Positions 2,445 through 9,701 of a DNA stretch of 64,000 nucleotides are shown here, in pieces. The first letter of the stretch is position 1. Each line of letters opens with the position of its first letter. A program made the position numbers and the translations under genes. The stretch comes from Amoeboaphelidium protococcarum X5 (lineage: Eukaryota; Fungi; Aphelidiomycota): positions 248,001 to 312,000 of the forward strand of contig JALDTO010000237.1 of NCBI GenBank assembly GCA_023515725.1, given 5' to 3'. The notes under the pieces are model-generated. The model was not told the DNA's origin. It searched no databases and saw nothing but the letters and a program-made list of their open reading frames with translations.

Positions 2445-4172
2445 ATGAAATTTGGAATATATTAATCAATCGCGTTAATCTTGTTGGCTTCTCAGTTCAA
2501 CACACTGCTAGTAGAGGGAACAAGCCATGACAAGGGCGCGTAAAATAGTCCTGGCTACGGATAATCTGCTCCCTCGAGTCCTGCACCAGCTGGTGGCTAA
2601 CAACCAGCGGCTCCTGTCCCTGCTCCCGATGAAAAGTACCGCATGAAGCTTCCGGATGATGTTCCTCTTCCGAGTGGGGCTTCTCCATAATCTGCTCCGG
2701 CTCCTCCTGCTCATCCAGTTGCTGGTGACTCTACCAAGCCTGCTTAAACTACTCCTTGTGAGTCTGAGAAGGCTCCCTAGTAAACTCCTCATCCATAGCC
2801 TGCGGCACCAAAGCCGGCTCCAATGCCTGCACCGCAGCCTACTGCTCCTGGTAACAGCACAGTGAAGCCTCCTACTGATGTTAAGCCTGATCAGACTAAG
2901 CCGTCATCTACGACTCCTTGCGAATCTGACTCCGTGGCTTCAAAGACGCATGTACCAGAAAAGCCTGCTCCTGCTCCGGCAATGCCAGTGCCTGCTCCAT
3001 CAAAGAATGGGACTAGCCCTGGCGGTGACAAGGCACCTACACCCAAGGCTCCTTCCGGTTCGAGCCCAGCCGGTGGTCTTCCTGTGCCTGCACCTTCCAA
3101 GACTGGTAAAGCGCCATGTACCAACACTGTCACTCTTTATGACCTGCCTCCTACCAACGCTCCTTAAACTGGTGGATCTGGCTCTCCTGCCGTGAACACT
3201 CCATCTTATGGCGGCGAATCTTAAGCACCTAGCCCTGATACTCCAAAGGGAGCTTCCCCTTCTGCAGGCGGTGGCCCTTCTGCCCCTGTTGCAAACGCAC
3301 CTTCCTACGGTGGTTAATCTCCATCTCCTGCTCCAGCTGGTTCAAAGCCGAGCGCAAGCCCAAGTGGTGGCTATGGTGGATCCAGTCCTGCTGGTCAAAG
3401 TCCTTCTGGTGGATACGGCAATTCATCTCCTGCCGGCTCAAAACCAACTGGTCAAAGTCCATCTGGTGGATACGGCAATTCATCTCCTGCCGGCTCAAAA
3501 CCAACTGGTCAAAGTCCATCTGGTGGATACGGCAGCTCCGGTCCTTCTCCTTCTCCTAGCGCCTCCCCGGCAACTCAGGCACCTGCAGGTGGTTAATCTC
3601 CTAAGAGCCCTAGTGGCGGCTATGGAAGCTCCAGTCCTGCGACTGGCGGAGACAATTGTAAGTGCGCATCTCCATCAAGCGGAGGTTATGGTCAATCTAG
3701 TCCGTCAACAGGCAGTGGTGATGGTGGATACGGTTCTTCTGCTCCTGCTGGCGATAACTGTGTGTGTGAGCCTGAAAAGAGCGAAGAGGCAAAGCAGTAT
3801 GAGCAGTTACCATTCTGTGATGAAGTCGATACTTCATAGTTTACTCCTGTCCTCATCAATCCACCTCCTGGGATGCATTATGGTGACAGCAATAAGGGTC
3901 CATCTTCATAGAATAATGCTACTGGTGGCCTTCAGAATTCCACGATGGGTGGTGGAAACTCAACACTGAGTAATACTACATCCATCACATCAACTACCAC
4001 CAGCTCCGCCCCAGCGGCAACTCAAACTCCAATAATCCCACAGAAGAACGAGAATGATGTTGGCAGCTCCATTGTGTCCAACTCTGATTCTAACAGTGCC
4101 GGTAATAAGATCGCCGGCGGTCTCTCTGCGTTCTCAATAGCGTTTACTTCTCTACTCATGATGGCTCTCTGA
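2445..4172 (+). CDS. Secreted, probably GPI-anchored Pro/Ser/Gly-rich cell-surface protein (~575 aa)
   Basis: Single frame with TAR=Gln from ATG 2445 (signal MKFGIYQSIALILLASQFNTLLVEG) to TGA 4170-4172. Contains PAP/SGGYG repeats, a Ser/Thr stalk, then NSAGNKIAGGLSAFSIAFTSLLMMAL (GPI-type hydrophobic tail). Joins track ORFs 2823-3167 and 3945-4172. Confidence 0.85.
3393..3534 (+). repeat. Coding tandem repeat, 57-nt unit x ~2.5 (GQSPSGGYGNSSPAGSKPT)
   Basis: Near-identical units start at 3393, 3450 and 3507. Confidence 0.9.
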
Positions 4173-4612
4173 ATAATTTGATGGTGGAAATAAAAAAAAT
4201 TAATTTTCGGTAACATTTTAATTACTTTCACACACTCCTCTTTACACTTTTCATTTGTTAAAGTTAACGGCGGGTGTAACGTTGCTCGATTAAATTCAGA
4301 TTGGATCATACCATGGTCTGAAATGTACAATCTAGTATTTTCTTGATCAGCGATCAATCAGTACAATGTATTTAATAAGATTATAAGCTATAATTCCACA
4401 ATCGCTCTTAAACTTGGCCCTAAGTTGGCTCAAATTGAATTCAGGTTGATCTACGAGAGGCAATTTGGATTCGGATCTGACGACGGACATGATTCAGGGG
4501 CTTTGAGAAGATAATTTATAAAATTTCACAATTTTCAAGCCTGCTTGATTATACCAAAAAAGTTATAATTTAAGATTTGATTATCAGCTAAGAGTGGCAT
4601 TTAAAGTTATTT

Positions 4613-6160
4613 ATGTTGCTGCTGCCGAATGTATTGGCCGTTATAGTTCTCTTTGATTCTCTTCGCGCGTAGCCAGTGACAGGTCGTGGATCTGGCCAGC
4701 AGGCTGTGGATGATGATGCTGATTTCTATGATTATTTTGGTATTAAATCAGAGTCTGACGGTGATATGATTTTGTTGGATGCCAATTAGTAGAATCCTAT
4801 TATTAGGCGCGGTGATCGCTAGTATCTTAAGCCTGATGGTGAGTATCTCAGTAATTATATCGTACCTGATATTGCACCAGAAGACGATGATGATGGCATC
4901 GCAATGGACGCGCTCTTTTCCACTTCACCATATGATTTTGATAGTGTTGTCGACGACCCTTCTCCTATGTCTGAGTAAGAGTAAGCTGATGTATAAGACA
5001 TCTCGGGCGATAAGTCTTATGAAGAGGAATTGGTAGATTTGCGTCAGTACCAACTATCAGAAAGTACCTCTGCTGATGGTGCTTATCAGTAAAAGATGCA
5101 TGAAGCATAAGTCAATAGTGCTGTGGAATCTTTGACCGATAGCAACCCGTACAGTATTCTATCCGACAACGACTCTTCTGGCAAAGGCAGTGAAGGCGAT
5201 AAATCTGTGCAGCATTCAGTAAAATCTAGTCAGGCGCATAGCAGTCAACGCCATGCATCGCAGTCATAGTCTTCATCAAAGAAGGCCTCGTCCAAGAAAT
5301 CAAAGTCAAAGTCTAAGAGCTAAAAGAATAAGAAGGGGGAGAATCAAGCTACTAGTGCTGCTGATGAAGACGCGCTTTTGGAAGCGGCAATCAAGGAAGC
5401 TGCTCAGATGAAAGCTAAACAATCAGAGTTTTAGGAGAAGGCTGTGAAAACTCTTGTGTTGTATCATTTTGAATAGTATAAAAAGCAGTTGGAGACTGGT
5501 ATTGAAGATAAGATAGTAGAAACAGCAACCAAGTACATTGAGCTTGAGGGTATTTTCTAAATGCTTCTGACGTCCAAGTCATACTAATCGCTGATTTAGA
5601 TGCAATCTTCCTCTGCTTCTACCACTTCTGTTGATTTGAAGATTGAGGCATTCTCAGGAGTTTTGTATTTTCTGGACAAGCTGCGAATGCTGGTCCCTTA
5701 GATCGCTGGCTTGCTTGATGCAATTTAGCATGAAAGGGGAGAAATTGATCAATATGTTTAGAATTTCGAGTCTGAATCCCCAGAATTTATAGAGATAACT
5801 GAAATCCTAAAGAGTTAGCAAGTCAGAGTGCAAAAGATAGTTTCTCAAATGGATACTCGTGTTGTGCAGTTTAGAAAAATCGATAAGTCCTTCTGTGATA
5901 CTATACTTAAGAACATGCCTGCAATCATGTCATTTGTTGATCTAAGACTTCATGATATGGAAAGAGACGTATAAGCAACGTATAAAAACGGGCGCGTATT
6001 GGACCAGGATTATACGGATTACATTAGCATGGAAATCAATAGAGCGTTGCAAGTTCTGAGCTACATTGGTGATGAAGCAGATGATGTGGCGGATTCTATC
6101 AGCAAGTTTAGAGTCTCTTCACAGTTGCGTTATAGAAAGATTATGCTTTTGACCCGTTGA
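4613..6160 (+). CDS. Secreted orphan protein, DFY-motif family member 1 (~515 aa)
   Basis: Open with TAR=Gln. Signal MLLLPNVLAVIVLFDSLRA|QPV, then DFYDYFG (4721-4741), an acidic region, Lys-rich SKKASSKKSKSKSK, DEDALLEAAI and a helical C-terminus. TGA 6158-6160. Confidence 0.8.
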
Positions 6161-6504
6161 TACCACGCGTCACTGCTCATTCATTGGAATGATATTAGAA
6201 ATTTGGAAGGTTTATAAGAGTTGAAGTTGATGGTACTTATAGAGAAATAAAATTTTAGATAGACAAAGGTTGCATAGATTCTTTTCTATTTTTCTCAGTT
6301 ATTGACAGTATAGCGGAGTTTCAACTTAAAGCCTCCTTGCAGAGCACATCAATATCAACCAATTTGATAGATTTGAATCTTGCATATCTCGTGCAGTCAA
6401 ACGACTTCAAACCTCTATCACATTCAGGGGCATATCATCATTTTCACTCTTTTTTTATTTTGACATTGCAGCAGTGAATTGACAAATTATTCGCTGTATA
6501 AGTC

Positions 6505-7902
6505 ATGATGATATCTTTATCGATAGTCTTTGTGTGGATCGCTGTATCTGAGATTATTGCTGCTCCTACGCGCTTCGTCGAGGACTTTTATGACACTCTT
6601 GGCTTTGATATGGATCGTCATGAAGACGGTGCACCACATGTAAAGTTTGGCAGTTTTGATAACACGAATCCTCTGAAAATATCTACTCTGCCTGAAGATG
6701 ATGACGCGCTGAGTAATTTCGGTGATGGTTAGCTTCTCGCCAATGAAGATGCTATTGCCAACATTGGCGAAATTGAATAGCCAGAGTCCTTTGCTTCTAA
6801 ATCTGTGATTGATAGCTTGGATAATAAATAAACTCCCTATAACTTTGATCGCGAAACTGGCGAGTATGATATCATTGATGCAAGTTAATATTAGCTGGAT
6901 GTATCTGCAATTAGCGGAGAGTTGCCGCCTGAGCTCTAGATCGACGCGTCAAACGGAGATCTGGAAGATGATTTCGATACTTCTGGCAATCAGTCCCCTA
7001 GTGAAGCTCTTAAAAAGCCATCCAGCTCAAAGAATAGGAACAAAAAGAAGAAGAAGAGCAGAAGCAAGGCATCAGCTAATAAGTCCAATGTTTAGAATAA
7101 AGGCAAAGCGCTGGATGAAGATGATGATGACTTGGACGCTCTCTTTGCTTAAGCTTAACTATAAAATCAGAAGATGGTTGAGTAGAAGCTGAATGAGCTA
7201 GAATCTGTGCACGCAAAGCAACTGTCAAAGTTAAAATACCAAGTGCACACCATGATTGGGCTTAAGGAGAATTTCAATCTATTCTATGAAGATTTTAAAG
7301 ATAAAGTCATGCAACTAAAGTCATTGATTGACGTGTTTTCCGCTAAAGAGAATATGGTTCCTAGTTTAAAGCTGGATATGCTGCAGAATATGGTGCTTTT
7401 TGCGTCGGAAGGCTCTGTACATTATGCGAACGCTTATGCTGCATTTGAGTTGTTTGAAAGCGCTCTGGATTGCATCAGTGTCAAGTTTCTGCAAACCAAC
7501 GATGCTCAATACTCTGGATTTGCTGAAAAGTATCAAGAGTTGACCGATAGCTATCAGCAAGGATTACAGCTTAAAGAGGAGTTCCCTCAATAACAAGCAC
7601 TATTTAAAGAGTTAATTAAAATTGTGAGATCTTACGGCAGAAGCTCTGAAGTTGAGGTGTTTGGCCATCTTCTGGGCCTGTTGGAGGATGTCCTGGAACT
7701 CCAGTGCGAAGATGATGGATTCGAGAGTTCGAGCGAAAGCGTGTTTGGTACTCGCGATAAGGTGGATATGATTTATGCGTACGTTTACGCCAATGAATTT
7801 CCATCTTAAGAAGCCTTAGCCATTTAATCTTAGATCACTGAACTGTTTTATGATTACATGGAAAGAATGGAACTCTGCAAGGCGTAGTTGGGATATCAGT
7901 GA
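6505..7902 (+). CDS. Secreted orphan protein, DFY-motif family member 2 (~465 aa)
   Basis: Signal MMISLSIVFVWIAVSEIIA|APT, DFYDTLG (6583-6603), acidic region, KNRNKKKKKSRSK, DDDDLDALFAQA, helical C-terminus. Joins three in-frame track ORFs. TGA 7900-7902. Confidence 0.8.
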
Positions 7903-8258
7903 TAATGAGGTGCATGAGTATTTGAATAGCTGAAGAGAAAATAAATTTTAGATTATTTAATAAGCTGTTGCATCTTTAATTTTGTGTCATGTAATGCTCA
8001 TATTACATTCAGAGTGAGAACATATATCATTCTATGGACATTTACAGTTTATGCAACGCATTTACTTATAATTCTTCCATATGCAGATGCCGAATTTCTC
8101 TATCAAAGTGTCGGCGTTTAAATTTTACTTCGTCGATTGACAGGGCGATTAAGTCAAGGGATAGACCACGTGGAAAATGATATTGAATGCTCGATTGATA
8201 TGGTGAGATTATCATTTCTCTCCAGATATATTGACAGAATATTAAAGAAACAGAAGAT

Positions 8259-9701
8259 ATGAAGAATGCATTTATCTTGCTGAGCATATTCTTGGTAATA
8301 CGTGCTATACCAACAGGTGGCACTCATGATGCTGCTGATGATGGCGATTTTTATAATCAATTTGGCGGTGATAAGAATGGAGAAGGTTAGGATGATGATG
8401 GTGTTGCATTTCCATCAATGTAGGCCATATAACCGAATATTAATATTCTGGGCGAAAGTGTTGATCAAGAGCATGGCATTAAAGTATTGCATAGCGCGTA
8501 ATCTTCGTAACCCAATCGCGATCAAGCCTCCTCCAGTATTAGTCAAAAGCCAGCGTCCAATGCGTGGTAGAAGCGTTTGAGTCATCTTAGATTGAGTGAT
8601 GACGCGTAAGGAGAGTCGAGCTAGTCGTTTAAGGACGATCACGTTTAATCTGAGCCGTAATGGTAAGAGATACCACGTGATCTGAGATCCGAGATTGAAG
8701 CTGGCCCATTCTAAACACCAAAGAAACCTGTCAGATTGGATCGCGCTCATAAGCAGGCGACTAAGTAGAGTCGAGCGACCTCATTGGCTCTTCTGAGCTC
8801 TTTATAGACACCTTAGTAATAAGATTAGCTAGATGAGGGGCACATTGGTGGAGACGTTGAACTAAACGCACCGTAGACCCCTGCTGATTATAAAGGTTTG
8901 TAAGGTGAAGGTAAAAGTGTCAGGTCCAAGTCCATTAAAAAATAAGCTATAATAGAGTCTGAGATGCAAACTTAAATTCTTCTACTTGACTAGCTAATGG
9001 AAGGAGCTTTGAGTTCTTAAGGTAAGGCGACGGAGTATCAAGGCTAATATGAACGTGCTCTCATGAGATTATAACATTCTCATGCTGGTGAAGACATTGG
9101 CACTGCATTTCTATAAATTCGATAGGAAAGTTTCCTGCTCTATGACGCGTTACTGAGCTTCAAAGAGTATCTAATCAGATTCCGCTAAACTTTGTCATCT
9201 AGTCCTGAAATGAGAAGTTTGTTGAAAGAAGGAGCTTAAGAGCTAACGCGTTTGGCGTCTCTCCATGACGTTGCCGTTAACGACTACAAGAGACTTCATT
9301 CCGAGTTCCTTTAGTATGATAATAAACTGGAAAATATTGTGTAATAAAGAATCCCTGCTATCATCAGTATCATTGTGACGAGTCTCAAAGATGCCGATCA
9401 AAAGTACTCATATTTGTGGCATTCTGTTCATGGTAACACGAAGAAGCTTTATAAAAAGTCCGCATTGAGCAATGAGATAGCTAGGCTTGTGCGTAAAGCT
9501 AATGATTTCTCTGAACTCATCAGTAAATATACAGACATTAATGGCAATGTATACGTGCAGAATTACGCCAACAAGTATGCGTAAATGGAGTATCGATTGG
9601 ATGAATTTTATAGAAAGTACACCAAGTTGGGACTAACAGACTTCAATCGACGGCCGGTCAAAAATCTTGAGGCAGAATTTGAACTGATATAGATTGAATG
9701 A
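8259..9701 (+). CDS. Secreted orphan protein, DFY-motif family member 3 (~480 aa)
   Basis: Signal MKNAFILLSIFLVIRA|IPT, DFYNQFG (8346-8366), disordered N-half and helical C-half. No in-frame TGA until 9699-9701. Confidence 0.8.

Follow-up and report, generated by a model that had tools for sequence, protein, structure and literature searches.

A tandem, species-specific family of putatively secreted proteins carries its own DFYxx[F/L]G motif in the aphelid Amoeboaphelidium protococcarum

In oomycete RxLR-dEER effectors and Plasmodium PEXEL proteins, a signal peptide is followed, within about 20 amino acids (aa) of its cleavage site, by a short motif in an acidic, disordered context, and such a motif is carried, per genome, by tens to hundreds of secreted proteins that are otherwise unrelated. 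Aphelids, the sister lineage of Fungi, are killers of algae, and to our knowledge no host-directed aphelid protein has been characterised so far. Here we analysed a 64-kb stretch of the Amoeboaphelidium protococcarum X5 genome (contig JALDTO010000237.1, positions 248,001 to 312,000; hereafter the window), in which an initial annotation had described three adjacent, co-oriented, intronless genes (A, B and C) encoding proteins of 465–515 aa with a DFY[DN]x[FL]G motif behind a signal peptide, and had proposed this motif as an RxLR/PEXEL-like leader of candidate effectors. The family is real, orphan and not described before, and its motif is confined to A, B, C and their duplicated copies, which argues against a leader shared across the secretome.

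Reading the window requires genetic code 6, in which TAA and TAG encode glutamine: 44 open reading frames (ORFs) of at least 200 aa are present with translation table 6 and only 1 with table 1, in agreement with the UAR-to-Gln reassignment known in A. protococcarum (PMC5304391). With table 6 we recovered the three genes at the coordinates and lengths first annotated, each ending in TGA and containing 16–35 in-frame TAA or TAG codons. Because the NCBI models of A (P0006) and B (P0001) are equal to the ORFs, both genes are intronless; for C, the basis is the uninterrupted code-6 ORF alone, without a retrieved database model. Orthologous copies of B are also present in the databases (P0004, MIR68_000465; P0005, MP228_006312), and the database counterparts are annotated as hypothetical proteins only. 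The upstream regions of A, B and C have no promoter motif of 8 or more bases in common. With TGA as the only stop codon, long spurious ORFs are frequent in the alternative frames of both strands, and those overlapping A, B and C, such as 4441–5001 (−) and 8212–8709 (−), should not be read as genes.

The motif sequences and their positions in A, B and C were as annotated, lying 7–17 aa past the presumed cleavage site in an acidic context. We back-translated the strict motif to GAYTTYTAYRAYNNNYTNGG and scanned the 23.6-Mb assembly with it, using the reversed pattern as a control. This gave six matches, compared with none for the control, and all six correspond to A, B and C or to their second copies in synteny on contig C57, so that the strict motif is not a chance match. 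A profile of the N-terminal 60–70 residues, built from eight family members, recovered the same six loci only (E ≤ 10). Relaxing the pattern to [DE][FY]Y[DNEK]x[FLIVM]G raised the number of matches to 44, compared with 10 for the control, and we read all 38 that fell outside the family in frame with code 6. Thirteen of these were true J domains, with the HPD tripeptide at +28 in most and at +41 in one, whereas the remainder were internal to proteins, in short open frames or in non-coding sequence. The genome holds a single other case of a signal peptide combined with the motif, in a DnaJ protein of the endoplasmic reticulum (ER) type (L009, G000:C24:31989-32008, −), whose signal peptide stands directly before a J domain that starts with DYYNILG and has its HPD at +28. 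Given that the motif is found only in family loci, it is the hallmark of one small family and not a secretome leader. In a duplicated gene pair (L020, G000:C146:1017575, +; L025, C155:775384, −), DFYNLVG stands at about aa 51, and the N-terminus before it resembles a mitochondrial presequence more closely than a signal peptide; the pair is unrelated to A, B and C by profile search.

Each of two assemblies holds the cluster twice in duplicated form, which makes four copies in synteny (the window and contig C57 of the same genome; L047 and L048 of assembly GCA_023515745.1), amounting to 12 genes. A genome-wide duplication and two sequenced strains have been published for A. protococcarum (PMC10608142), and four copies fit these. 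DFYxx[F/L]G is kept in all 12 genes. The DFYDTLG of B and that of C use different codons at four positions, indicating that constraint acts on the peptide and that recent gene conversion does not explain the identity. The motif is also kept in the deeply diverged B4 allele, in which the surrounding 135 aa are only 55–78% identical. Between copies, the ratio of nonsynonymous to synonymous substitution rates (dN/dS) was 0.30–0.45 for A, B and C (0.32–0.45 for A against its orthologous copies) and 0.11–0.17 for the neighbouring genes, the upstream gene U and a WD40 gene. U is far more conserved than A, B and C, with 94–98% aa identity and a dN/dS of 0.11–0.16 between haplotypes. A, B and C are thus real, fast-evolving genes under purifying but relaxed selection.

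A four-way DNA alignment of the locus showed sharp mosaic blocks, with deep allelic divergence inside A and B. Across positions 4825–6009, which cover most of gene A, the two assemblies are 65–75% identical (synonymous divergence, dS, about 0.9–1.0), and the first approximately 70 codons of A and the flanks are 85–95% identical between assemblies. Across positions 6304–7169, in the 5′ part of gene B, haplotype L048 is 64–73% identical to the other three. The DFY motif persists in these divergent alleles. The sequence flanking the mosaic blocks is 85–98% identical across haplotypes, and the grouping of the four haplotypes differs from gene to gene. Judged from the alignment, these blocks may be ancient (balanced) alleles or the product of introgression or gene conversion.

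In plain pairwise comparison, A, B and C are similar at the N-terminus only, and at this level the annotated absence of much other visible similarity stands. It does not hold for profiles, each of which we built from one gene's four copies, using U as a control. The A profile matched B (A 216–300 with B 171–255, E about 1e-6 to 1e-4 on a single-sequence search space), and A and C matched each other (A 395–451 with C 319–382, E about 6e-4), whereas the control U gave E > 0.1. Whole-length alignments in the same order were obtained with hhalign (P of 2e-4 to 1.4e-3). The islands of similarity, which follow one another in the same order in the three proteins, comprise the A|xP junction, DFYxxFG/LG, an N-P island, PEDDD, QYQL, a Lys/Ser patch, the acidic D-E-D..L..A start of a helix, and the helices themselves. 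These comparisons point to A, B and C being old tandem duplicates that have undergone extreme divergence. Tandem paralogy, as indicated by this weak same-order similarity along the proteins, accounts for the motif that they share. The initial annotation had named precisely this combination, a motif confined to the three genes and explained by paralogy along their length, as the outcome that would speak against a general leader. Neither the C-terminal halves, which retrieved only themselves and their duplicated copies, nor the N-terminal profile revealed further paralogues in the same genome.

Each protein begins with a hydrophobic core of 12–13 residues (Kyte–Doolittle value of about 2.7 for the best 12 aa), after which an Ala at the presumed −1 position, invariant in every copy, is followed by x-Pro. 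Hydrophobicity and junction heuristics predict that a signal peptide is cleaved at this Ala-x-Pro junction. The annotated signal peptides are heuristic predictions from a hydrophobic core and a conserved junction. A, B and C contain 0–3 Cys residues and few N-glycosylation sequons; a second hydrophobic segment is absent, as is a C-terminus for ER retention of the HDEL/KDEL type. Comparison of the four copies of each gene showed a modular pattern of conservation, in which a variable linker separates a conserved N-terminal module (aa about 20–100) from a C-terminal domain that is conserved as well; from aa 201 of B onwards, most 20-aa bins have 75–90% invariant columns (lowest, 65%). For B, AlphaFold2 produced no confident structure in residues 1–207 (predicted local distance difference test score, pLDDT, <50) and helices in residues 203–461. 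With the C-terminal half of A modelled at a pLDDT of 81, this bears out the annotated order of a disordered acidic region and then a helical half. In the AlphaFold2 model of the C-terminal domain of A, a long bundle of three helices is accompanied by a small terminal one; the whole-protein model of B had a pLDDT of 41, too low for a fold search. Coordinates of these features are collected in Table 1.

Table 1. Positions of the three genes and their predicted protein features in the window
Feature	Position	Strand	Details
Gene A	4613..6160	+	515 aa, table-6 ORF; identical to P0006, NCBI hypothetical protein of 515 aa on the same contig
A, signal-peptide-like N-terminus	4613..4672	+	aa 1-20; presumed cleavage ...LRA|QPV; Kyte-Doolittle 2.73 over 12 aa
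A, motif DFYDYFG	4721..4741	+	aa 37-43; identical in 4/4 A copies
A, Lys/Ser-rich basic patch, resembling a nuclear localisation signal (NLS)	5270..5338	+	aa ~220-242; net charge +10 in aa 211-240
A, C-terminal all-helical domain	5357..6157	+	aa ~249-515; AlphaFold2 pLDDT 80.8, predicted template modelling score (pTM) 0.65, six helices
Gene B	6505..7902	+	465 aa, table-6 ORF; identical to P0001
B, motif DFYDTLG	6583..6603	+	aa 27-33; identical in 4/4 B copies
B, Lys/Ser-rich patch, then acidic DEDDDDLDALF helix start	7012..7107	+	from sequence composition and A-profile match
B, helical C-terminal half	7111..7887	+	aa 203-461; AlphaFold2 secondary structure, low to medium confidence
Gene C	8259..9701	+	480 aa, uninterrupted table-6 ORF
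C, motif DFYNQFG	8346..8366	+	aa 30-36; derived variant, DFYDTLG in the other 3 C copies

An exhaustive phmmer search with residues 228–362 of B only, against 1.84 billion proteins, returned B itself and two spurious matches to repeat proteins (P0002 and P0003). When B, A and a mixed profile were used in word-indexed searches, hypothetical proteins of A. protococcarum were the only matches, and no match was found in Pfam, among PDB sequence profiles or by a language-model search of the ESM Atlas. The orphan status first annotated is thus upheld, and the family of A, B and C appears from these searches to be specific to A. protococcarum. With the C-terminal model of A as the query, Foldseek found nothing in the PDB at E ≤ 1e-3 and TM-scores in the Atlas were below 0.5. 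A wide fold search with VIA returned syntaxin Habc domains, spectrin repeats, BAG domains and designed bundles at Z of 10–14.5, a range that VIA itself rates as ordinary for helical models. We rejected membership in the BAG, syntaxin or spectrin families, the similarity being generic to helical proteins and the sequence identity 7–17%; a BAG domain in particular has no Pfam match here, and its Z of 10.7–10.8 sits among many unrelated bundles.

The reading we favour, at a probability of roughly 0.6, is that A, B and C form a species-specific, secreted, modular family in which the DFY motif forms the core of an N-terminal module particular to the family and the helical domain is the working part. 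One ancestral gene would have given rise to A, B and C by tandem duplication, and the three would then have diverged almost beyond recognition while keeping one modular plan. This plan would start with a cleavable signal peptide and a conserved acidic N-terminal module of about 60–80 aa with D-F-Y-x-x-[F/L]-G at its core, and would continue with a variable acidic and Ser-rich linker ending in a Lys/Ser-rich, NLS-like patch, before an all-helical bundle domain of about 260 aa. As the most constrained island of the module, the DFY motif probably acts as a short linear site that these proteins need for their maturation, their sorting or the binding of a partner. Several points weigh against this reading. 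Outside the N-terminus, global alignment of the protein bodies did not rise above block-shuffled controls; the proposed whole-length paralogy is drawn from weak profile signals and shared architecture; and the proposed secretion is drawn from heuristics applied to the sequence.

The last of these points bears on the alternative that A, B and C are not secreted at all, the hydrophobic N-terminus being an anchor or irrelevant and the helical proteins remaining inside the parasite's own cell, for instance in the nucleus or cytoskeleton. Such proteins would suit the Lys-rich, NLS-like patches, the long helical bundles of spectrin or syntaxin type, the near absence of Cys and the scarcity of N-glycosylation sequons. 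We nevertheless consider this unlikely, as the hydrophobic core and the invariant Ala-x-Pro junction are kept in 12 of 12 genes despite substitutions within the core, and no other hydrophobic segment is present. If the proteins do enter the secretory pathway, their N-terminal module might be a propeptide-type determinant that sorts them not to the host but to an internal compartment, for example the digestive vacuole, or, in the zoospore or cyst, to an organelle of regulated secretion. N-terminal vacuolar sorting propeptides sit right after the signal peptide, as does the module, a conserved block of about 80 aa. That aphelids are phagotrophic and possess a digestive vacuole (PMC6299283) also counts for such a role. 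It is made rather improbable by the absence of a match to any known sorting motif and by the restriction of the motif to three cargo proteins, and it leaves the NLS-like patch unexplained. An ER function has also to be considered, with an N-terminus derived from or mimicking the start of an ER-luminal J protein and with A, B and C as residents of the ER or secretory pathway that make chaperone contacts. In form, the motif matches the beginning of helix I of a J domain (D-[YF]-Y-x-x-L-G), the same genome encodes the signal peptide and DYYNILG J domain of L009, and BAG domains can be superposed on approximately the last 80 aa of the A model (Z 10.7–10.8; root-mean-square deviation 1.9–3.5). However, A, B and C have no HPD tripeptide about 28 residues downstream, and a hidden Markov model built from J domains of the same genome aligned approximately 12 residues of them at about 0 bits, compared with a domain of approximately 65 aa. 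Together with the lack of a Pfam match, this led us to reject a J domain (PF00226) and to regard the likeness as resemblance only. With no Pfam match to DnaJ or BAG, a BAG-like Z below the noise level that VIA states for helical bundles, and no HDEL/KDEL-type C-terminus, an ER or chaperone role seems very unlikely.

We hold it to be similarly remote that DFY[DN]x[FL]G serves the aphelid secretome as a general leader for sorting or host translocation, borne by unrelated cargo as RxLR, PEXEL and Crinkler LFLAK are. The layout of the proteins would fit (signal peptide, motif 7–17 aa past cleavage, acidic context, divergent Cys-poor cargo), and pairwise similarity outside the N-terminus is not significant. 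Nevertheless, the motif is limited, across 23.6 Mb, to A, B, C and their duplicated copies, the relaxed matches outside the family are J domains or lie at internal or non-coding sites, and the cargo proteins are weakly similar in the same order, as expected of paralogues. A narrower proposal retains a delivery role within the family: DFYxx[F/L]G would be a new aphelid-specific signal, either a processing or sorting site or a short linear motif that binds a host factor, in a polymorphic family of effectors whose secretion takes place during infection and whose Lys-rich patch takes them into the algal nucleus. Within the motif, F-x-[D/N]-x-[F/L] and Y-x-x-hydrophobic resemble adaptor-binding motifs. 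We regard this proposal as unlikely; if it were true, the deep allelic blocks in A and B would reflect host-driven balancing selection.

For the secreted modular family that we favour, an effector-like role at the parasite–alga interface, which we infer entirely from the features of the genes and proteins, is plausible because A, B and C are orphan, tandem, fast-diverging and Cys-poor, because A and B have an NLS-like patch, and because the genes lie among others for secreted or surface proteins. The initial proposal of candidate effectors is thus retained with regard to an orphan tandem family, a constrained motif after a signal-like N-terminus and an effector-type profile, and loses its RxLR/PEXEL leader. 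The main result is negative: the DFY motif is not a secretome-wide delivery signal and so provides no RxLR-like route to a catalogue of aphelid effectors. At the same time, the triplet is a compact set of candidates, with 12 natural variants in two assemblies and one invariant seven-residue motif, that is suited to work on localisation and secretion.

Upstream of A, the neighbouring gene U (2445–4172, +) encodes 575 aa that include a signal peptide, regions rich in Pro or with GGYG repeats, and a hydrophobic C-terminus, a composition consistent with a surface mucin of the glycosylphosphatidylinositol type.

Among described systems, ER-luminal J proteins of the Scj1/ERdj3 type share D-[FY]-Y-x-x-[LF]-G with A, B and C, and in the ER-type DnaJ of the same genome this sequence directly follows the signal peptide, as noted above; a J domain has HPD and helices II–IV in addition, whereas A, B and C are without these. 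The predicted C-terminal domain of A superposes on antiparallel three-helix bundles (syntaxin Habc, spectrin repeat and BAG; Z 10–14.5), which reflects a common arrangement and not membership in any of these families. To the RxLR-dEER and PEXEL proteins the likeness extends further than the layout behind the signal peptide, as these also have divergent, Cys-poor and often helical cargo encoded by tandem, fast-evolving genes, and A, B and C have, as they do, a short motif within about 20–60 aa of the N-terminus. In contrast to RxLR and PEXEL, the DFY motif is not found in many otherwise unrelated secreted proteins (six genomic matches); it belongs to a single three-gene family, is unrelated in sequence and is known from sequence alone. 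The translations of A, B and C contain neither LxLFLAK nor HVLVxxP, the motifs of Crinklers, and Paraphelidium has been reported to be without crinklers (PMC6299283). Toxoplasma GRA proteins with an NLS, an example of the tandem secreted orphan families of parasites, have no relation to A, B and C in sequence or specific fold, and their TEXEL-type motif is absent from the aphelid proteins, but they share with them a signal peptide (predicted in A, B and C), a long disordered region, an NLS-like patch, a narrow lineage distribution and relaxed constraint.

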